A stretch of DNA of 63,873 nt, filler included, from Polymyxa betae A26-41 (lineage: Eukaryota > Protista > Endomyxa: Phytomyxea): the NCBI GenBank assembly GCA_003693705.1. It is 5 parts of 5 records of this genome, joined end to end, with 100 filler letters (N's around TTAATTAATTAA, not from the genome) between each part and the next. Parts side by side here need not be neighbours in the genome. Positions count along the whole stretch, not along the records: positions 1 to 14,143 come from RBZT01000815.1; 4 more parts are not named here. One strand, given 5' to 3'. A program made the position numbers and the translations under genes. The notes beneath the pieces were generated by a model, which saw only the letters and a list, made by a program, of their open reading frames with translations, did not search any database and had not been told where the DNA came from. Below are positions 2,628 through 14,699 of the stretch, piece by piece. Position 1 is the stretch's first letter, and the number at the start of each line of letters is the position of its first letter.

Positions 2628-3087
2628 GACGCTGTTACGAACGGATATTATTCTATAGATTCTCTACAACCTCAATGACATGGAGGCGCGGCCCATGTCT
2701 GTCAGATGAGATTATTATGGGGCTCTTTGATTATCATATCGATCATTAACAATACAAACTTGTAACCTGCCATTGCCTCATCACCCTTAGACTAGCAAGC
2801 TAGGAGGGTTAGCATTGCGTCTGATGCTCAGACCCGTTCTATCACATGGTCCCTACTCCTTCGAGAAAGAGAGAGTCGTTCGGGATAGCAGAGAAACAGC
2901 TGGTTTTCCGACTCCAGAAAATACCATGATAACATTACAGAGAAAAAAAACAAGAATCATAGAGCTGGTTTCTGAAAGATTGGGTTATCAGGCCTGCCGC
3001 TCGACTACTTCGGGCATTGTATGAGAGCTTAAGATGTACGAGAATCATGCATATTCATATGATTTGAAACGATTGTGAGAGAACGGA

Positions 3088-5285
3088 CGTTAACAAAGAC
3101 AAATCGAAGCGCATCGAAAATTTGATAAGCAGTTTTCGGGATAACCTCATAAGAACTGCCAGAAAACCTTCATTAAGTTTGTACAGCTTAAAGGTCCCCA
3201 CTTTTGTTATAGAGAGGAAGGACTGTATGGTGTCGTACATTATGATAGATGGTTGTCTCAAATTCCAGATAGATAGGAAACGAGAGTCCATCAAAGTCAG
3301 ACCTTAATCTCTGACATTGATCGGAGTCGTTAAAACCCTAACACGACTGGTGCCCTGTGCCCAATGGCGGCAAAAACTGCTTGATGGGCCGACCCGTCCG
3401 ACCGGCCTTGGACAGGATCTGGGGGAATCCAATTCTACGTCATTATATATCAATTGCGCTCTTCGTACAAACTCTCGTTCTAATTTCCATCACCATGCAC
3501 GTTCATGTAGTCTTGATCGCCGCGGCCGTACTGGTCCTGGGGGCAACCGCCGCCTCGTCCGACCCGGAATCTGATCTCGTTCATCTCCCGGATCAGGAAT
3601 TTCACGTGGACAGCGGCCAGGTCGTACAGGCCCTGTTCGAATCGCCCAGTACCCGGATCCAGGAGATCCCCCAGTTGGTCCGTATTCTTGCTGACCGAGT
3701 CCAGTACGATTCCAAGACTCGCGATGATCTGAAGAATGTCTCTCCTCAGCTGGTCATGGGCGTGTATCAGTTTATAATGTGGGATGAGATATTGAGCAAT
3801 GAGCAGAAGGTTCAGCTACTGCGCTCTATGATCTTAGATCTGGGCCTGACCTTGATGAATGATGTGCACGAGTTCCTATTTTGTATCAGCAATGGTAATC
3901 CCTTACCCGGACTTCCTGTCCTTGGCATACCCGTTCCACAAGATCTTTCAGAACAAGTTCTTGATGTGATCGAGGAGAAAGTCGAAGAGAGCTTGCGTTG
4001 GCATCAACGAGGGCGCCAAGGCCAAATCCTCGCTCAAATGCGAGCAAGGAAACCGGTTCTTTTCAAAAATCCTGGTCACCATGATCTCGAGAACAAATTT
4101 TCGCCCATTCTATCCGTTCCCGTTCCGTTATGTGCTCAACGATAGATATGGTGTCGCCTCTCGTGTTCTGACCTCGTTTTTCAAAGAATCTCATCCTCTT
4201 GCTGAGTGGAAGAACTTACTGGCTCTGCGTCAGCTCGGGATCATGTTCAATCTCGATATCTATCTTCAATGTGTCCAGATTCCGCTCGAATCCATTCCGG
4301 ATATCGTTCCTCTGCTAAATCTCGGAAGTTTTCCGGACTTTTTGCAATTATTATCGGAGCTGGACATGGCCAGCAACACCAATACATATCAACAAACCCA
4401 TCATGTTGGACGAACTGCTCCGGACCAGGTTCTGCAATGGCTGCGGATCCCGTTTATTCAGCGACAAATCCTCACCAAGCCAGAAACGTTCATTGAATTC
4501 GCCGGCGACATGATGGTATCTGATAACACGGAGTTTTTCCGGGGTCTGGCCCAACTTCAGTTCATGCCCGAGATCATCTATGAATCCTGTTCATACAATG
4601 GCTTTCGTCAGACGGTGCTGAGGAAAGCCGTTTTCCATCAACGGTTCGATTTAGCGCAGATTCTGATGGGAATTCCGAATGCGTCTGTGTTCGTGAAGTT
4701 CGAGCGCACGAATTCCGTCTTCGATCTCATTCTTTGTGATACAATTGGCAGTTCTGAGAATGCGGCTAATGAGTTTTTAAAGTGCTCGGAATTACACAAA
4801 CTGATGCTCTCGAACATCCCAGAACTGAAACAATCTCTTAAATCTCTTATCGATGATCGAGATGTGAAACATATCCGTTCTCTGGTTCAACATCCTCTCT
4901 ATTGGAAGATCCCAGAAGATGTTAAACCTGAACTCATTCAATATTCAAATATTCATTGTCATGACATTTATGATATATTATGCTCTGCCAAAGAGCCAGC
5001 TCAAACAGTTTCACATTATAACTGAAACGTTTCAAGATTGTTTTCAATAAAATCCTTCATCTCAGCTTTGTGTATTGCTTTGTTTGATCTCCCTTTCTAG
5101 ACGACTGCTTCTCACAACTGTGCGCGTTTACAGGCTCGAAATTTTAAGTTATCGTTTGCTCAAAAATCAGATTCAAAACTCAATTGGCCTTTTCTGTCTC
5201 CCAATTGAGATTTCTATATTTACACTATATTTTCACATTTTCGCCGGCGCCACATTGTGGTTGATAGAGCTCTGTAACAACGTAG
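3088..5285 (+). repeat. Segmental duplication, copy 1 (copy 2 = ~7541-7903 plus 11904-13852)
   Basis: Continuous nucleotide similarity across upstream region, CDS and 3' flank. Copy 2 is split by the 4-kb insertion at 7904-11903. Confidence 0.9.
3495..5025 (+). CDS. Putative secreted effector-like protein, paralog with F-box deleted; one frameshift at ~4098-4101
   Basis: Signal peptide MHVHVVLIAAAVLVLGATAASS. ORFs 3357-4145 and 4081-5025 join if one T is removed from AAATTTTCGCCC, giving KFRPFYP as in the paralog. Confidence 0.65.
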
Positions 5286-5469
5286 GGTTTAGGAACCCAA
5301 CATCCATGATCAGAAGTTTTTACAATAAAATCATGGTGTTACATGGATGGCTATGGCTTAAAAACGTTCAGCAGCTGTCTGTAAAGCAGGTAGAATATGC
5401 CGTGACAGAATATTGGATTGGATTGTTCTAGTTATTGTGCCTTTCGGCAAGGAGGGCGTCACGTTAACT

Positions 5470-6291
5470 CTAGTTCAGGAAACAGACCCGAAGGTCCGTG
5501 GCTCTCCTACTAATAAAAATTCGGAGGCCTACACCTTTGAGAGGAAAAGGCGAATTTCAGCCCAACAGAGGGCTTAGAAACCTATCAATGAAGGGCAGCG
5601 ACCTGTTGGCCCAACTCTACAGGGAATTGAACCCTATACCCAAACATTGACTCGATCTCATGCTGGTCTCCACGGATATTCTCGAACACAGAGTAGAGAT
5701 GGTAATACAGACTATCAGATCTACTTTGATAGCCCTCTATTAAAAGAGTAAGAACAGGACACACTCGAGATCGATCATATTTACACAATCTAAATATAGA
5801 GCCCAGCGATGAATGTCGACACTGCAATAAACAGAGTGAGACTATAGAACATCAACTCCTGAAATGTAAACAATTTAAAAGCAACTGAAAAAATATCGAA
5901 AGGAATACGAACAAAATAACATTACTGACTTAAACGACGCACTGTATACACACGCCAAATTCATGACAAAATTTCTAGCAAAAGTATGAGCTGTTACCTT
6001 TAGCGACGCATGGTGAAAGCTGGGAAACCAGTAGGGGAATATTAGATAAGGAGTTGGATTGGGCTGGTGTCTATCTTACCTTATCGAGGCTCTCTTTGGT
6101 CCTGCTGATAGGGCCGTTTACGATCAACAATTATTCAAACGGGTGAATTACTGCAACGCCCCGAAATCGGTAGAAGGGGTTCTGGAATCTATTTGGGCAA
6201 TTTGCCTAAATTTTCCAACCAATGTTTTTTGGAAAGAGCGCCGCCTGTTGACCATAAATCAGCGAACTAGTCGAATCCAATCCAATCCAAC
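5470..6291 (+). mobile_element. 5'-truncated non-LTR retrotransposon (LINE) 3' fragment with (AATCC)n tail
   Basis: Translates RVRTGHTRDRSYLHNL..CRHCNKQSETIEHQLLKC and LNDALYTHAKFM, homologous to 57310-57528. Its 3' UTR aligns with the copies at 50165-50450 and 56914-57215. Confidence 0.8.
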
Positions 6292-6429
6292 GATGCTTTC
6301 GAGATCATATAATAAACTAGGGTTTAGGAACCCAACATCTATGATCAGAAATTTTTACAAGAAAATCATGGCGTTACATGGATGGCTATCGCCTGAAAAC
6401 GTTTAGGAGGTAGAATAAGCCGTGAGAAA

Positions 6430-7240: not shown

Positions 7241-8210
7241 TAAAAGAAACGATTTTACAATGCCGTAATGGACGTGCGACTCCGAATTGGTCGTTGCAGT
7301 TGTACTTGCGCAAAACCCCTATCTGCCCCTGCTAAGTACATTACACAGCACTGCCCCGTTTTGCTTCTGCTGATGAAGGTTGGGAGATCGCGACCTTATT
7401 TGATGGTCCGAGCTCTCTGTAAGATCAGGCTTCTCAAGATATCTTGAAGATCGATGTCTTATCATTAGGCTCTTTGCTAATTAAACTCCTCCTTGTTAAT
7501 AATCTGACTTCATCTATACCAAGCACCTTTGATTGAACTGAAGTTAACAACGGCAATTTGAAGCGCATCGAAACTTTGTTCAGCACTTTTCGGGATAACC
7601 CCATAAGGGCTGCCAGAAAAACTTCATGAAGTTTGTACAGCTTGAGAAAACTCCGCCACTTTCGTTATAGAGAGGAAGCACTGTCAATGGTGTCGAATAT
7701 TTTAATGTATAACTGTCTCAAATTCCAGAAAGATCAGAAAACTGAGTCAATCAAAGTCTATGATTAATCAGCGAGATTGATCGACCGGAAGGAGTCCTTA
7801 AAACCCTAATAAGACTGGTGGCCCTGTGCCCAATAGCGGCGCGTGATGGACCGACCCGTCCGACCGGCCTTGGACAGGATCTGGGGGAATCCAATTCTAC
7901 GTCATTATTGCTCAAAAACCGAACCCAGTGACAGGCTGCGCAAGTTTTTGTGGCGACTGGCTGAAGGCAGCCAGTCGCCCTTCTATTGACTGTAAGGGTA
8001 GTCCCGGTAGTCCCGGTAGTCCCGGGATGTCCTGCTGTCTGTGCCATTAATCCTGTTCTCACAAAAAACTTTTTATTGTCGTTGTTGGCTTAGTTTGGAG
8101 CCTGGCGGGCGATGCGTCCAGAGCGGCGTGGATTAGGGACGGCGGCTGGAGACAGCTGGCTTGAAGGCGTCGGCATCACGTTGCATGCTGTCGGAGCTGG
8201 GCCTTGAACT

Positions 8211-8573
8211 TCAGCTGGCTCTTCGCCATGTAACTCGGCCAACTGGCCTGGCCTGGAGGGGTTCAATTTGGTTCTGCCCGAACTCGTTCGGTTCCTGGCT
8301 CAGGACCACGGCATCTGCCACCGGCGGATGGTCCTCATCAGGTGCATCCAACCCGCAGGAGCAGTGGCATTTGTAAAATTCCAGCTGATTTTCCAATTGT
8401 CGAATACGTTCTTTTAAAACGATAACTGCCGAGGCATCCTGCTTAGCCTTTTGCCGTGCTCGTGCGGCCTTGGCCCGGAATCGCTCTTGCGCCTTGAGAT
8501 GTTTCTCCGCGAGCAACCGAAGCCGTTCGAGCTCGACGTCATCGGCGCTGGTTGGAATCGCTTGTCGCGGCAT
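8211..8573 (-). CDS. Small basic coiled-coil (bZIP-like) protein inside the YR element
   Basis: Intact 120-aa ORF with ATG. Basic segment KHLKAQERFRAKAARARQK, then heptads VIVLKERIRQLENQLEFYK and CHCSC. Confidence 0.55.
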   Translation of the reverse strand: MPRQAIPTSADDVELERLRLLAEKHLKAQERFRAKAARARQKAKQDASAVIVLKERIRQLENQLEFYKCHCSCGLDAPDEDHPPVADAVVLSQEPNEFGQNQIEPLQARPVGRVTWRRAS

Positions 8574-8879
8574 GCCTGATCGCTCTATGCTGTTTTGTCG
8601 CTCCGTGACAATAAAATGGTGCGTCTATCGATGATGCACTCTTTTGTCTATCCATGTCTACAAATTCTTGGGTTTTGTATTGGTTTTATCCACAGCATAG
8701 TTTTTATATAAATCATCAAAGCCAAACGTATCGTATTCAGAAAATCAGGATTATCTTCAGGTAGAGAATCCTAATTTCTGCATTTCACATGTCAAGAAAG
8801 ATTCAGTTTTCAAACAGTGATTCGTTTCTCGCAGTTGGCAGTCGTGTTATCTTGAAACTCTTCACACTCTGGGAGATTA

Positions 8880-11697
8880 TTAAGCTGCTGGACCGCTTTC
8901 AGAAAGGTAGAAGGTCGATTCAGTTTTTTTTTTCTTTTTGCTAGCTGGATTTCCGGCCGCTCGGAGTTTCAGCCAGGATATTGCGGCATCCGAACCTTGA
9001 ACAGCTAGCCGTCCGACGTCTTTCCGCCAGGCGGAACGTTCCCAGACGTTGTCAGGCAAACGGCATATAGTGGTGTTAGGGAGAAATCGGCAAACAAAGC
9101 GAGTAATTGTCTTGATCTCGGAACGAATACGTTTGCTTTTCTTACATTGATGAACAAATGCACCATCACGAAGACCGCTTTCGTGGTCGAACCATGGTGA
9201 GATTAACTCGTGGATTTCTTTGCCGTCGAGTGACAAGAAACGTTGTGGAAACTCAAGCGGATTCTGCTGGCCAGATCGTTTTTCTCCAGATGTAACGACT
9301 GCTGAAATCGGATCTTCGATTGAGACAATGGCACCTCCGGAATTTTGCGACCATTCCAGAGCACCGCTTTCCGAAAGGTTACGATCTTCAATTCGCGAAT
9401 TTTGTAGCGATCGTCCGACGTCGCTCTAATGGTGCCAAATCAATAATCGTGCTCTTAAATTTATTTGAATCAGCTATTGGGAATAAAAAAATTCACAAAC
9501 AAACAATATCACAAAGTTTAGAAAATTTCAAAACCTTTCAAAATCTTAATCCTACTCATAAACCAGCCATAACACCATCAAAAAAATATCCTAAAATCAG
9601 ATACTAGACGGACATGTCCGGGAGCGGAAAGTGTGGACGATGTAGGGAATGCACAGCGCAGAACGTCCATAATCTCCTGATGTCGCCGCTCAGCATCCAG
9701 TTGGATTTGCGTTTTTAGATCAAGATTCCGAAAACGCTTTGTCTCCGCCTGAAACTGCTCTGCCTCAGAACGATTTCGTTCTTGGCGCCTCTCCCCGACC
9801 AAAATTTTGTCATTGAGTGTCCTGAATTCTGATCGAAGGCGTAAAACCTCAGACAGTCGAATCTGTATGTTGCTGCAAGTGGGCCAGACTTCTTCCCATA
9901 GTTGAAGTAAAGCGAAAACCGCATTCGGATAACTTTCTTTCGGAAACCGTTTCAACCTGAATCATAATCGCACGGGTCAGCACTCGCTCTTTGATGATTG
10001 CAAATTCATCCGGATCTATCATTGACTCGACCAGAGCCCGACGGAAATTGACGACCAGCATATGAGAATCTCCAAGTTCTGACACCATATCGTCGAACGC
10101 GATGATAGCTGCAGCGGTCATGCATTCAGCGAAAATGGGGTGGAGACGATCGATATTCGAATGGAATATGGCCGACACCAATGCATAGGCTTTGTGTTCA
10201 GGATCATCAGCGGCCAGAGTGCTGCGCGGAGCCAGTCGTGGACAGGCTCCTCCAGTGTCGACAGTTCCGGACCTGAGCGGAACCCGCGCCATTTTATGCA
10301 AAGCAGCGAGGTCCCACTTTACATCGTAATTTCTCTGGGCTCCGGTTTGTTGCGGATCTTGATTTTCCCACCCATTGTACAAGGCATTTGCCTGGCGAGG
10401 GTGATTGAGAACCTCCAAAAACATGATGCTTCTCAGCGAATGGGCTGTGATGTCTGAATTCACATGCGTCCCGTTGTCTTTCATAGCGTAGAGTAGCTCT
10501 TGAAGATGTCGGTTCAGATACTGTGACGGCTTCTCGCTTGTCGCGGCTTTTGGAAAAAGGAACGAGCTGCTCTGAAAAATTTTCAGTATGCAGAAAAATT
10601 TATAAAAAACACAAACCTCGGACTTGGATGTTAACGGACCGCAAAATGATAGATGGCGGAAGTACAGATGAAGCGGATCCATAATCCAGTCGTTGATGTT
10701 GTATGCCATTGGGAGAATGTCCGTATGGGTCGAGGTCTTTTTCTCCAAAACATAACGTAAATGAGACCTGATTACATCTTATCGATATCAAGGCGCCAGC
10801 ACAAACTTTTTTCGAGTCGCGAAACCATACCTGAAGCCCGGTCGATAACGGGAGAGCGCGGCTTGATAGTGTCGGCGCAAATGTGGCTGGCGCGCCCTCC
10901 TTTAATTGCTTGAAGTCCAAAGAGCGATGAGCTCTCGATCTTCCCAAGGCGGATCGCAGTGAGAACGATTTGGCGAGCTTCTTCAAACGAGGACGGAGGC
11001 GCATTATTGGTCAGGGGCAGACCCTTCTCCTGGCGACGCTGGCTATTCAGTTTAGCTGCCTTGCTAACGCAGGTCGAAAAGAAGTCGCCTAGCAGAGACT
11101 GAAGTTGAGACGACTGAGCTGCAAAATTCTCCAGAAAGAACGTTTTAATCGATGACAAAAATGCTTTTAGAGCTATAGAGAACAGCTGAAAGGAATCTAA
11201 GTTTTGGAGACTCAAAACATTCTGGAGGTTTTCAAATGTTGTTCATTAATGAGCCAATACATGAACCGTCCCAAGAGCTGTACACCGTCTTCGCATTTCA
11301 AGTGTTCTATCCTTATATCATCGAAACTAGAGATTGTTTCCCGGAAACTGAATTTTGAATGGTTAGAATGGTTTCAAATTAGGGTTTAGGGTTTGCAAAT
11401 GTCAAACCTGCTTGACAGAAGGAATGCATTGAAATGAGTGCGTGCTGTATGCAGCTGAGCAGTGGACGACAATTTTTTTCAACAAATGAATTGACAGTAA
11501 GACGTTTTCGTTGGCACCATCTTCTTGACCTTCCTGAGGCTCCCGCTGCAAAAATTTCAACATCCTGAGAAAGGCTGGTATATGCTGATTACCGCTCGCT
11601 TTGAACGGGCCGACCGCCGCTGCATTCGGATCGCAGATTTGACAAGCAAGACCAGCGACCTCGGGCAGGAATGAGCAGGACAAAATGGCAATGGCAT
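8880..11697 (-). pseudogene. Spliced tyrosine recombinase gene (Crypton-type), disrupted
   Basis: Catalytic order R (GGRASH, ~10895), K (..KKT, ~10740), HxxR (TAHSLR, 10442-10431), W (NGW), Y (QRNY, ~10327). GT-AG intron at ~11407-11350. Coiled coil (9578-9955) and C-terminal helical ORF (8880-9236). In-frame TAA at 10772-10774 and homopolymer frameshifts. Confidence 0.75.
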
Positions 11698-11956
11698 TCC
11701 TCGATTACAGTAAAGGTCCCGACAAAGAACGTTCACGACTGTGAGGAGTCCGCGCCGCAGACTGTCACTGTGGGGAGTGATTGACCTCTTTCAATCCAAT
11801 GGCCAGTTTCCCTCTATCGATGACCCAGTGAGTGTGACGGTCAGCGAAGATGGTTCTGCTTATTAGGTCTGGCCGGTCCGGTTTATTGAACAATAATACT
11901 AAGTATATATCAATTGCGCTCTTCGTAGAAACACTCTCGTTATAATTCCCATCACC

Positions 11957-13540
11957 ATGCGCGCTCTGGTTGTCTTGATCGCGGCGGCCGTACTGGTCCT
12001 GGGGGCAGCGACCGCTTCGTCCGACCCGGAATCTGATCTCGTTCCTCTCCCGGATGATATCTTGGAGCAGATCTTGGAGCAGTGCTCGGCCACGGACCTG
12101 GGACATCTCAGTCTGACATGCCGCCGCCTGCTTCACGCGGACAACGGCCGGGTCGTACAGGCCCTGTTCGAATCACCCCATACCCGGATTGACGAGATCC
12201 CCCAGCTGGTCCGTATTCTTGCTGACCGAGTCCTGATCGATTCCAAGACTCGCGATGATCTGAAAAATAACTCTCCTCAGATGGTCATGGGCGTGTATCA
12301 ATGTATAATGTGGAATGAGATATTGAGCAATGAGCAGAAGGCCCAACTACTGCGTTCTATGATCTTAGATCTGGGCCTGACATTGATGAATGATGTGCAC
12401 GAGTTCCTAGTTCGTATCAGAAATGGTAATCCCTTACCCGGACTTCCTGTCCTTGGTATATCCGTTCCACCACAGAATCTTCCAGAACCGGTTCTTCATT
12501 TGATCAAGCAGAAGGTCGAAAAGAGCTTGCGTTGGCATCAACGAGGGCGCCTGGGCCAAATCCTCATTCAAATGCCAGCAAGGAAACCCGGACTTTCAGA
12601 AATCCTGGTCACCAATATCTCCTAAACAAACTTCGCCCTTTTTATCCGTTCCCGTTCTGTCATGTGCTCGGACCTGAGGATGATATCGCCTTCCACATTC
12701 TGACCTCGTTTCCCAAACAATCTCATCCTCTTGCTGAGTGGCAGAACTTACGGGCTCTGCGTCAGCTCGGGATCGTGTTCCAGTTTCATCACTATCTTCG
12801 TTATGTCCAGATTACTCCCGAATTCTTTCCGGATATCGCCCCTTTTCTCAACTTTCCCCCTTTTGTTTCAATCATAGAATCATTAAGCAAGCTGGTCATG
12901 GCCCGACGCACCGATGTCAACCAACAGGACCATGATGGACATACTGGCCCGGACCAGGTTCTGCAATGGCTGCGGATTCCATTTATTCAGCGACAAATCC
13001 TCTCCAAACCAGCAACGTTCATCAGACAGGCCTGCAGAATGTTGAGGTCGAAGAACACGAAGTTTGTCCGTGGTCTGGCCCAACTTCCGTTCATGCCCGA
13101 GATCATCAATGTATCCCATTCGGACAAGGGCTCTTCTGTGACGCTGCTGATGAAAGCCGTTTCCAATAAATGGTACGATATTGCGCAGATTCTGATGGGA
13201 ATTCCGAATGCGTCTCTGTTTGTGAAGTTCTGGTGCCAGCCTGACATCTTCGATTATATTTTTCGAAATACGATAGGCTGTTCTGAGAAAGCGGCTATCG
13301 ACATCCTAATCTGCTCGGAATTCATCAAACTGATGCTCTCGAACAACTGAAAAATTCTCTTAAACGTCATATCCACGTGTTTTATGTAGGACAGTTCCGT
13401 GATCTAGTTCAACATCCTCTCTATTGGAAGATCCCAGAAGATGTTAAATCTGAACTCATTCAATATTCAAATATTCATTGTCATGACATCTATGATATAT
13501 TATGCTCTGACAAAGAGCCAGCTCAAACAGTTTCACATTA
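11957..13540 (+). pseudogene. Signal peptide plus F-box protein (effector-like), paralog 2, disrupted
   Basis: MRALVVLIAAAVLVLGAATASS then F-box LVPLPDDILEQILEQCSATDLGHLSLTCRRL. Relative to copy 1 it has a 1-nt deletion at ~12595 and a ~7-nt deletion at ~13345 causing an early stop. Confidence 0.7.
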
Positions 13541-14699
13541 AAACTGAAACGTTTCAAGGTTGTTTCCAATAAACTCCTTCATCTCATCTTTGTGTATTGC
13601 TTTGTTTGCTCTCCTTTTTTAGACGACTTCCTCTCACAAATGCGCGCCTTTACACGCTCGCAATTTAAGTAATGTTTTGTTCGCATTAGCCAAGATTTAC
13701 TATGCAGCGTGATTTGTGACGGTTGCTTAAACATCAGATGCAAAACTCAATTGTCGTTTTCTGTCTCCCAATTGAGATTTATTTATTTACACTTTATTAT
13801 CATATTTTCGTCGGCAATACGCTGTGGTTGATAGAGCTCTGTAACAGCGTAGAACTCCACTACATTTGAAATCAGGCTGGTGAAGACCGTTCCGCAGGCA
13901 TTTGACTCAATAGGATATATCGTACAATGCTTCGAGTAATCAAGTGCCAGTGCTTTAATATCAGCACCGATATCAACTAATCGCTGTTTCCAAATACGAT
14001 TATGTGTTAAAAGCTCCTCCAGATCATCAATACTTTAATTATATTGTGTTGTAACGTAAATATCTGATGGCAATCCTAAACGTAGATCTTGACTAACACA
14101 CCCAGGACTAATGTAGATAGCATGCATTCGCGCTCCAGAAACANNNNNNNNNNNNNNNNNNNNNNNNNNNNNNNNNNNNNNNNNNNNTTAATTAATTAAN
14201 NNNNNNNNNNNNNNNNNNNNNNNNNNNNNNNNNNNNNNNNNNNGAGACTTGTCGACGAGAGGCGCCGCACTGCCCGTTTTTATGCGGCGGAAGGTTCGGA
14301 GATCGCGATCTTATTGGATGATCACGCTGTAAAAGATCATGAAGATGGTGACGATTCTTTAATATGAGGCTCTTTGCTGATAAACACCTTCTAAAAAGGA
14401 GAATTCGTTGCCTCTACTTTTGTATGTAATGCTGGAGCTCGTTCTCATTTCTATCTTTCTCGTCAAGTTTTGAGCATTTTGCATCGAGGGGGGAGAATTT
14501 AAATCAATGATCTTTGATCAGCTTTATTTAGAGATCGGCGGGAGAAAGGCACTTGTTAAAGAAACTCCCCCGCTCACGACCCAGGAAATATTGTTGGTGC
14601 ATTGATGCTGGAAAGACTTGAGCGGTACTTTGAAGTTGACGAGTTTTTTCTTTTGCAAGCCAACCAGAGTTTTTTTATAAGGCGAAGGTGCAAACTGTA

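Follow-up and report, generated by a model that had tools for sequence, protein, structure and literature searches.

A likely Crypton-like transposon with inverted ends in the plasmodiophorid Polymyxa betae

Cryptons are described as DNA transposons that carry only a recombinase and lack inverted repeats, and the direct repeats of 4-6 bp at their borders are ascribed to microhomology with the target site (PMC3212892, PMC13465315). TATGG is the terminal sequence of most CryptonS elements, and CTGTAAG is that of the single diatom family (PMC3212892). CryptonF-1_cRei, which is active in Chlamydomonas mutation-accumulation lines, has the ends CACCG and inserts at CAYCG; it excises cleanly and prefers 5' untranslated regions and gene-proximal DNA (PMC9977147). 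Here we describe an insert in a stretch of DNA from Polymyxa betae A26-41 (assembly GCA_003693705.1). The whole stretch that was analysed, 63,873 nucleotides (nt) with filler included, is called the window. The insert occupies positions 7904-11906. We read it as one copy of a low-copy plasmodiophorid DNA transposon, which likely moves in the manner of Cryptons.

Comparison of the window with its paralogous unit shows that the insert interrupts one unit of an old tandem duplication. Unit 1 spans approximately 3076-5285, and unit 2 consists of 7530-7903 plus 11907-13852. When the insert is skipped, the two units align continuously across the junction at 80-83% identity, and the flank repeats D11 (93%) and D17 (94%) directly border the insert. 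The uninterrupted paralog reads CCAATTCTACGTCATTATATATCAATTG at 3429-3456. Unit 2 is broken after ...CTACGTC by ATTATTGCTCAAAAACCG... and picks up again after ...CGGTTTATTGAACAATAATACTAAGTAT with ATATCAATTG. The split points are 7903/7904 and 11903-11906, which gives an insert of approximately 4.0 kb. A sequence-only reading of this DNA had proposed an insertion with a visible empty site, and the unit alignment bears this out. The same limits, 7904 and 11906, are where the sequence shared by other copies begins and stops. In contigs assembled from two public runs of reads, agreement with the window likewise breaks off immediately outside 7904 and 11906. The common copy ends and the divergence points of the run contigs therefore define the element as 7904-11906, a member of a low-copy family with fixed ends. 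The insertion may post-date the duplication, or unit 1 may have lost the element in a precise excision; the data fit both orders of events, and either one implies mobility.

The genome searched for further copies comprised 27,085,814 bp in 1,001 contigs, which are given below as C-numbers. The features of the insertion and its ends are as follows.

7904-11906, minus strand (gene strand): whole element, 4003 bp including both short terminal repeat copies, delimited against the empty paralog
3442-3446, plus strand: ATTAT, present as a single copy in the uninterrupted paralogous site (empty site 3429-3456)
7904-7925, plus strand: left inverted repeat ATTATTGCTCAAAAACCGAACC, 92-95% identical in the C547, C849, and C790 copies
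7904-7908, plus strand: left terminal ATTAT, whose bases double as the outer end of the left inverted repeat
11875-11897, minus strand: right inverted repeat (GGTCCGGTTTATTGAACAATAAT on the plus strand), which pairs with the left end
11898-11901, plus strand: spacer ACTA, which separates the right inverted repeat from the terminal repeat and is conserved among right ends
11902-11906, plus strand: right terminal AGTAT, an imperfect copy of ATTAT, whose TAT (11904-11906) matches the target exactly

Agreement with the empty site extends through CATTAT in the left flank and starts at TATATATC in the right flank, with TAT as the overlap. The same 3-nt ambiguity is seen in a paralog-derived contig that joins 7905 to 11904. 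A perfect ATTAT repeat would give the right junction ACTAATTAT; the actual junction, ACTAAGTAT, is one base off (AAT-TAT vs AAG-TAT). Across the genome, left ends begin with ATTAT in seven of eight cases and with ATAAT in the remaining one. All eight right ends follow the pattern ...AATAA(T/C)-AC(T/C/A)(A/T)-A-N-TAT. Their spacers are ACTA (four times), ACTT, and ACAA, and ACCA and CCCA in two mini-elements. The four bases directly before the final TAT are TAAG (twice), TAAT, TTAT, AAAT, and TAAA, with CAAT and CAAA in the mini-elements. The right terminal motif is thus A[T/G/A]TAT in all copies, and the base before TAT is T, G, or A. The 4 nt that precede the left ATTAT (CGTC, AGTA, TGAA, AGGA, CATA, CAGA, and TATA) differ at every one of seven sites. 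Since the spacer on the right is conserved and the bases before the left ATTAT are target-specific, the exchange has to be placed on the right-hand side of ACTA, inside the (TA)ATTAT that element and target share. The window copy and a 553-bp derivative on C790 have the G of AAGTAT in common, and this G is therefore an element base. In these two copies, the AT that begins the left ATTAT is derived from the target, whose ATTAT is confirmed by the empty paralog.

These junctions change part of the earlier picture, in which the target was not duplicated and 4-6 extra nt lay at one junction. TAT stands on both sides as part of an imperfect 5-bp terminal repeat, and ACTAA(G) is element sequence. 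Aligning the junctions of the copies had been proposed as a way to find spacers of variable sequence and 4-6 nt length; the spacer proved conserved at all eight right ends. The ends are common to the copies, and they fit a shared terminal motif, not ordinary target-site duplications. The target motif seems to be read as such, beyond a mere match to the donor. The empty site had also been likened to a circle junction. At this locus the likeness is weak, as only 3 of 12 positions match in register and a 1-nt shift is needed. When seven sites are taken together, the 12 nt on the left side of ATTAT agree with the right arm of the element at 39 of 84 positions (approximately 27% expected), with enrichment of AAT.A...TA, so this part of the idea gains some ground. 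The right flanks match the arm at 30 of 96 positions, which is the chance level. The resemblance of left target flanks to the right arm is suggestive in this small sample.

The inverted ends noted from the sequence alone are confirmed by alignment. Aligned with the reverse complement ATTATTGTTCAATAAACCGGACC, ATTATTGCTCAAAAACCGAACC agrees in 20 of 23 columns once a single 1-nt gap is allowed; the first 12 positions need no gap and agree at 11. The left end is arranged as ATTATTGCTCAA-AAACCGAACC, which pairs with ATTATTGTTCAATAAACCGGACC. The terminal 38 nt are approximately 95% conserved in the C547 copy, whose interior is 65-68% identical. Two mini-elements, C302:1283-1345 (63 bp) and C925:15596-15672 (77 bp), have the ends ATTATCGCTCAGAATCCGAACC and GGT(T/C)CGGATTT(T)AACACAATAAC. 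They consist of approximately the two inverted ends, the spacer, and ATTAT or A(T/A)TAT, and little else. In both, the inner arm block AAACCG is changed to AATCCG at both ends. Such co-variation of the arms is the pattern that would be expected of protein-binding arms, and the inverted ends of approximately 20 bp may be the binding arms of the recombinase.

About ten diverged copies and short derivatives with these ends are found elsewhere in the genome. The copies on C734 and C177 are 85-88% identical to the window copy. A subfamily on C547, C849, and C635 is 65-70% identical to it, and fragments on C641, C899, and C642 show their relationship in protein sequence. The 553-bp derivative on C790 carries an internal deletion, and C293 and C687 hold isolated ends. 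Two small sequence features also lie inside the window copy. The 9-mer GGTAGTCCC is repeated three times at 7997-8023, and a diverged form is present in the C790 derivative. A telomere-like CCCTAAACCCTAA is found at 11379-11391.

The long frames of the element are all on the minus strand, and one gene occupies most of the 4 kb. Three mini-introns (45-53 nt) give a continuous frame over the catalytic region. The features of the gene, from its start, are as follows.

11546-11592, minus strand: intron 1, 47 nt, GT..AG (CT..AC on the plus strand), absent from two error-free contigs of the public run X3, which join 11545 to 11593
10831-11242, minus strand: exon that encodes the N-terminal domain and, in GGRASH (10883-10900), the first arginine of catalytic type, 47% identical over 115 residues to L013:796-1416 of a metagenome relative
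10778-10830, minus strand: predicted intron 2, 53 nt, GT..AG, phase 1, which restores the frame between GGRASH...IDRAS and VIRSHLRYVLEKKT
10572-10616, minus strand: predicted intron 3, 45 nt, GT..AG, which corresponds exactly to a 15-residue gap against P0002 and P0003 (BLASTP, alignment A5)
9852-10777, minus strand: catalytic-domain exons and a conserved helical C-terminal extension, an open frame of 309 amino acids with the relatives P0001 (E 5e-48), P0002, and P0003
10728-10745, 10428-10442, 10362-10376, and 10323-10337, minus strand: the motifs EKKTST, HSLRS, NGWEN, and QRNYD in the catalytic exons
8883-9425, minus strand: conserved C-terminal region (FPQRFLSLDGKEIHELISPWFD...FVCRFLP), with counterparts at the C-terminus of P0001 and in the C547, C849, and C734 copies
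8211-8573, minus strand: basic, coiled-coil open reading frame (ORF) of 120 amino acids, a last exon or a second gene, kept in L013:3132-3401 and C734

Because intron 1 is skipped in its contigs, X3 probably holds RNA. The position of intron 2 is taken in C547 by a longer AT-rich stretch full of stops. Differences between the subfamilies fall on codon positions 1, 2, and 3 at 0.34, 0.21, and 0.60 (881 codons), and this bias shows that the frame evolved as a protein under purifying selection. The ORF of 120 amino acids has weak coiled-coil Pfam matches only, and it is covered by error-free contigs of X3 and of a further run, X8. These contigs cover 7928-8607 without any difference. Their stop near 8604-8607 points to either a short transcript of its own or the border of an exon for this ORF. 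The labels of X3 and X8 name other organisms, and the two runs are probably RNA from infected roots.

Protein searches were run with single, unjoined exons or natural relatives as queries. An exhaustive HMMER search over 1.8 billion representative proteins returned only three relatives.

P0001: 50% identity, on a metagenome contig of soil type (L013)
P0002: in a Riccia sorocarpa assembly (L014, CM100799.1, 34.74 Mb)
P0003: in Plasmodiophora brassicae (L015, CP145414.1)

Three further word-index searches for homologues and one scan of Joint Genome Institute metagenomes yielded no more relatives, and the alignment stayed shallow. The motifs GGR-A-S-(H/D), (K/V)KT, LFP, HS(L/I)R, GW, and Y are kept in P0001-P0003, including P0002 and P0003, which are only 27-31% identical. 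Counted by hand, the spacing is approximately 33 residues from R to K, approximately 85 from K to H, 3 from H to R, 24-27 from H to W, and 14 from W to Y. The R-K-H-R-W-Y spacing of Cre and Flp is close to this. On the basis of these residues and the weak leads given below, the element protein is probably a tyrosine recombinase. The sequence-only reading had predicted a spliced R-K-HxxR-W-Y recombinase; the series R...K...HSLR...W...Y on the minus strand and the spliced gene hold up, and the recombinase fold was left unconfirmed by profile and structure searches.

L013 is degenerate and L015 is rearranged, and neither has recognisable transposon ends. The P0003 gene is set in rearranged sequence with local duplications that are 100% identical (4080-4379 and 9796-10095), and its 3' end has a perfect inverted duplication of 64 nt. 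L015 may be a remnant or a domesticated copy. P0002 lies in a liverwort chromosome and adjoins a weak reverse-transcriptase gene; its presence there could reflect transfer, contamination, or a wider, patchy distribution.

Two comparisons point towards a tyrosine recombinase, and both are weak. The best shape match of the window model in an atlas search was an Oomycota 'Ndc10 domain' cluster with a template-modelling score of 0.39. The language-model neighbours of P0003 were hypothetical proteins of Oomycota and diatoms, followed by PF00589, NDC10_II, and DUF3504 clusters, with scores of 0.92-0.96. The two leads agree with each other. Furthermore, hhalign was used to compare alignments A3 and A5 with Pfam-positive recombinases of the same genome, and the sole region that it paired was LF(P)...HSLR, in register.

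The element resembles Cryptons in many respects. It is an element of the 3-5-kb class with one long, intron-containing gene that encodes R-K-HxxR-W-Y motifs and a conserved C-terminal region, and it is low in copy number. A 5-bp motif stands at both ends and is found a single time in the empty site; its left form ATTAT and its right form A(T/G/A)TAT match that one copy in the paralog, as the short terminal direct repeats of Cryptons do. One mismatch between donor and target is tolerated in each case (CACCG / CAYCG there, AGTAT / ATTAT here). Short non-autonomous derivatives exist, and the insertion is close upstream of a gene. As in Cryptons, neither a reverse transcriptase nor a DDE transposase was found by Pfam among the ORFs scanned, which were mostly on the minus strand, with some ORFs left unscanned; the expectation that the interior would lack a reverse transcriptase was thus upheld. 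A terminal motif that is shared with the target fits the Goodwin/Crypton model (PMC3212892, PMC13465315, PMC9977147), not the logic of Tn916. The nearest named Cryptons are CryptonS of oomycetes and diatoms (PMC3212892) and CryptonF-1_cRei (PMC9977147). The element differs from Cryptons in its terminal inverted repeats of approximately 20 bp, its motif (A)TTAT instead of TATGG or CTGTAAG, a presumed recombinase that is invisible to DUF3504 and Phage_integrase models, and its host, which belongs to Plasmodiophorida, Rhizaria. Crypton remains the closest described kind, as had been suggested at the outset, and the searchable literature, with Repbase left aside, holds no report of Cryptons in plasmodiophorids or Rhizaria. 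Judged on that literature, the element probably represents a new inverted-end Crypton-like family of plasmodiophorids.

The following steps would account for the observed ends. A tyrosine recombinase encoded by the element would join the two ends into a circle. The junction of the circle would read ...GAACAATAAT-ACTA-A(T/G)TAT-TGCTCAA..., with ...GAACAATAATACTAA(T/G)TAT joined directly to TGCTCAAAAACC. Its arms would be arranged as GAACAATAAT-ACTA-ATTATTGCTC, which is two inverted arms with a 4-nt spacer between them. In the next step, the circle junction would recombine with an ATTAT on a chromosome and cross over within the TAT or (TA)ATTAT common to both. A crossover within a shared motif leaves that motif on both sides without a true target-site duplication. 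This mechanism would be that of the established Goodwin/Crypton model and would involve no new principle.

A number of observations weigh against this account of a Crypton-like, recombinase-driven transposon. The single empty site in hand is a paralog, not an allele, and no empty counterparts of the C790 and C547 insertions turned up when the genome was searched for them. A pattern search of the assembly detected no circle junction, nor was one seen in the contigs of four public runs, although contigs cannot show rare forms. Every copy in the assembly has stops or frameshifts, and even the best-preserved one, the window copy, is apparently frameshifted near 11220 and 9886 relative to its relatives. 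The autonomy of any copy is not supported, as all carry lesions. Cryptons as described lack terminal inverted repeats, and the element has them. As to the protein, searches of Pfam, PHROGs, and NCBIfam with exon-sized ORFs and P0001-P0003 gave no recombinase family even at E = 10, and profile scans found no match of the element protein to DUF3504 (PF12012) or Phage_integrase. Sequence and profile searches of PDB gave no match either. The probabilities in the hhalign comparison were 2-3%. Two AlphaFold2 runs reached a mean predicted local distance difference test score of 37.5 and 52.9; the models were poor over the catalytic part, and only the C-terminal helical extension was confident. Foldseek searches of PDB and VIA-wide fold searches with these poor models were uninformative, and a language-model search with the window's own ORF returned unrelated matches.

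Three other explanations were considered. The inverted ends, the exact repetition of TAT at both junctions, a protein without a recognised domain, and short non-autonomous derivatives, which are common among such transposons, could all be explained by a cut-and-paste transposon whose transposase, of DDE type or an unknown kind, duplicates 3 bp of target (TAT); in that case the conserved gene would not be a recombinase. We regard this as unlikely. If TAT were the duplication, the inverted repeats would not be terminal, since the right one would end 6 nt inside the element and the left one would start 5 nt outside it. Moreover, AT precedes the left TAT at nearly all sites and ACTAA-N precedes the right TAT, and this constant context fits a fixed terminal motif, not duplicated bases of an arbitrary target. 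The scanned ORFs include no DDE-like one, whereas the residues and their spacing fit R-K-HxxR-W-Y. As a class, DDE cut-and-paste elements, whose terminal inverted repeats directly adjoin a target duplication of fixed length, were set aside, as the right inverted repeat ends 9 nt short of the flank (a 4-nt spacer plus the 5-nt motif) and no ORF is transposase-like. Quite unlikely as well is a tyrosine-recombinase transposon of separate origin, for example of DIRS/Ngaro type or from a viral integrase, with a likeness to Cryptons in mechanism only. The missing DUF3504 and Phage_integrase matches and the inverted ends, unlike those of Cryptons, would suit such an origin, as would the presence of other Pfam-positive recombinase families in the same genome; Cryptons themselves are reportedly not monophyletic (PMC13465315). 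Against it, the language-model neighbours are Oomycota and diatom clusters and families of the Ndc10/DUF3504 type, which are Crypton-related, and the contexts GR..D, [IV]KT, LFP, SHS[IL]R, and G.W resemble, by eye, the CryptonS rows of PMC3212892 (supplement 4). DIRS and Ngaro elements, which combine a reverse transcriptase / RNase H with the recombinase and have split or inverted long terminal repeats, were rejected as a class, as the ORFs scanned contain no reverse-transcriptase match and the only repeats are the ends of approximately 20 bp. The other recombinase ORFs of the genome that match Pfam are at C723:14456, C946:6828, C641:58301, C18:19090, and C653:83874 (L058-L065). One group of them is DIRS/Ngaro-like (GHSLRIGGATE...GRWRSSCY) and one is CryptonF/Ndc10-like (HVTRGSSAR...GRWNNQ...Y).

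The sequence-only reading had favoured the logic of Tn916, in which a variable, non-duplicated coupling sequence from the prior site lies between inverted core sites. The half-sites CAATAAT and ATTATTG would indeed flank a short spacer in the circle, and one position before the terminal TAT differs among copies (T, G, or A). The element and Tn916 also share a presumed circle and tyrosine recombinase, inverted half-sites with a short spacer, and the absence of a target duplication of fixed length. A Tn916-like element is nevertheless highly improbable. A heteroduplex coupling sequence predicts that spacers of element type and of target type occur about equally on either side, whereas the right spacer ACTA is conserved and the matching 4 nt on the left are always target-specific. 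The spacer is approximately 80% identical to its consensus by hand count, and this variation is no greater than the divergence of the copies that are 85-88% identical. The coupling-sequence class was rejected accordingly, with ACTA constant at the eight right ends and left-end bases that follow the target; the conserved right and variable left bases run counter to the coupling logic first proposed. The element further differs from Tn916 in that its crossover lies in a motif shared with the target, its host is eukaryotic, and its gene has introns.

The Crypton-like reading can also be compared with other recombinase systems. The predicted circle junction resembles loxP/Cre, FRT/Flp, and dif/XerCD in its inverted arms GAACAATAAT / ATTATTGCTC, which extend to approximately 20 bp, and its short, asymmetric spacer. 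It differs from these sites in that the spacer is only 4 nt, the crossover would lie beside the spacer, and the targets are degenerate (ATTAT plus a weak AAT.A...TA on one side). Starships are likewise DNA elements with a tyrosine recombinase, short direct repeats from target microhomology, and sometimes inverted ends (PMC13465315). Unlike the element, Starships (Captain / DUF3435) are tens to hundreds of kb long, carry cargo genes, and are restricted to Pezizomycotina. A wider, joint reading is plausible but tentative. By this reading, the element would belong to an undescribed Crypton-like superfamily, so far represented by plasmodiophorids, a soil-type metagenome contig, and one liverwort assembly. 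Its recombinase-binding inverted arms of approximately 20 bp and asymmetric core would make it a eukaryotic transposon with a lox/att-like site. Targets would be chosen by an ATTAT half-site that is read by the protein, beyond homology alone, and transcription and splicing of the family would continue in infected roots.

The surroundings of the insertion show further features. Each duplicated unit contains a gene pair (3497-5025 and 11957-13350) that is led by a signal-peptide protein (MHVHVVLIAAAVLVLGA... and MRALVVLIAAAVLVLGA..., respectively). An F-box-like stretch (LPDDILEQILEQCSATDLGHLSLTCRRL) follows the signal peptide in the unit-2 copy only. The ATG of that gene, at 11957, is 50 bp from the element, which lies upstream of it. 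At 1545-2638, a segment of approximately 1.1 kb has 98-nt inverted repeats (88% complementary) and a palindrome at 1565-1614, and it has the look of a foldback insertion or one resembling a miniature inverted-repeat transposable element. Between the duplicated units, 100-nt direct repeats (88%) are found at 5275-5374 and 6310-6409, 1035 bp apart. Inverted arms of 22 nt at 5412-5433 and 6265-6286 lie just within them, and the whole could be either a further small element or a duplication that arose locally.

Among eukaryotic DNA transposons, no class is less well understood than the Cryptons. The reported lack of inverted repeats makes it difficult to define where these elements end, and their recombination sites are not known to have been dissected. 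The co-varying arms, the fixed 4-nt spacer, and the 5-bp crossover motif of the P. betae element make up a defined attachment site open to in vitro tests. The insertion offers an example of a transposon in the promoter region of a duplicated gene for a secreted protein. For plasmodiophorid genomics, the element provides a model of a transposon family that annotation pipelines miss, as no domain is detected in it. The family would extend recombinase-type transposons to Rhizaria.

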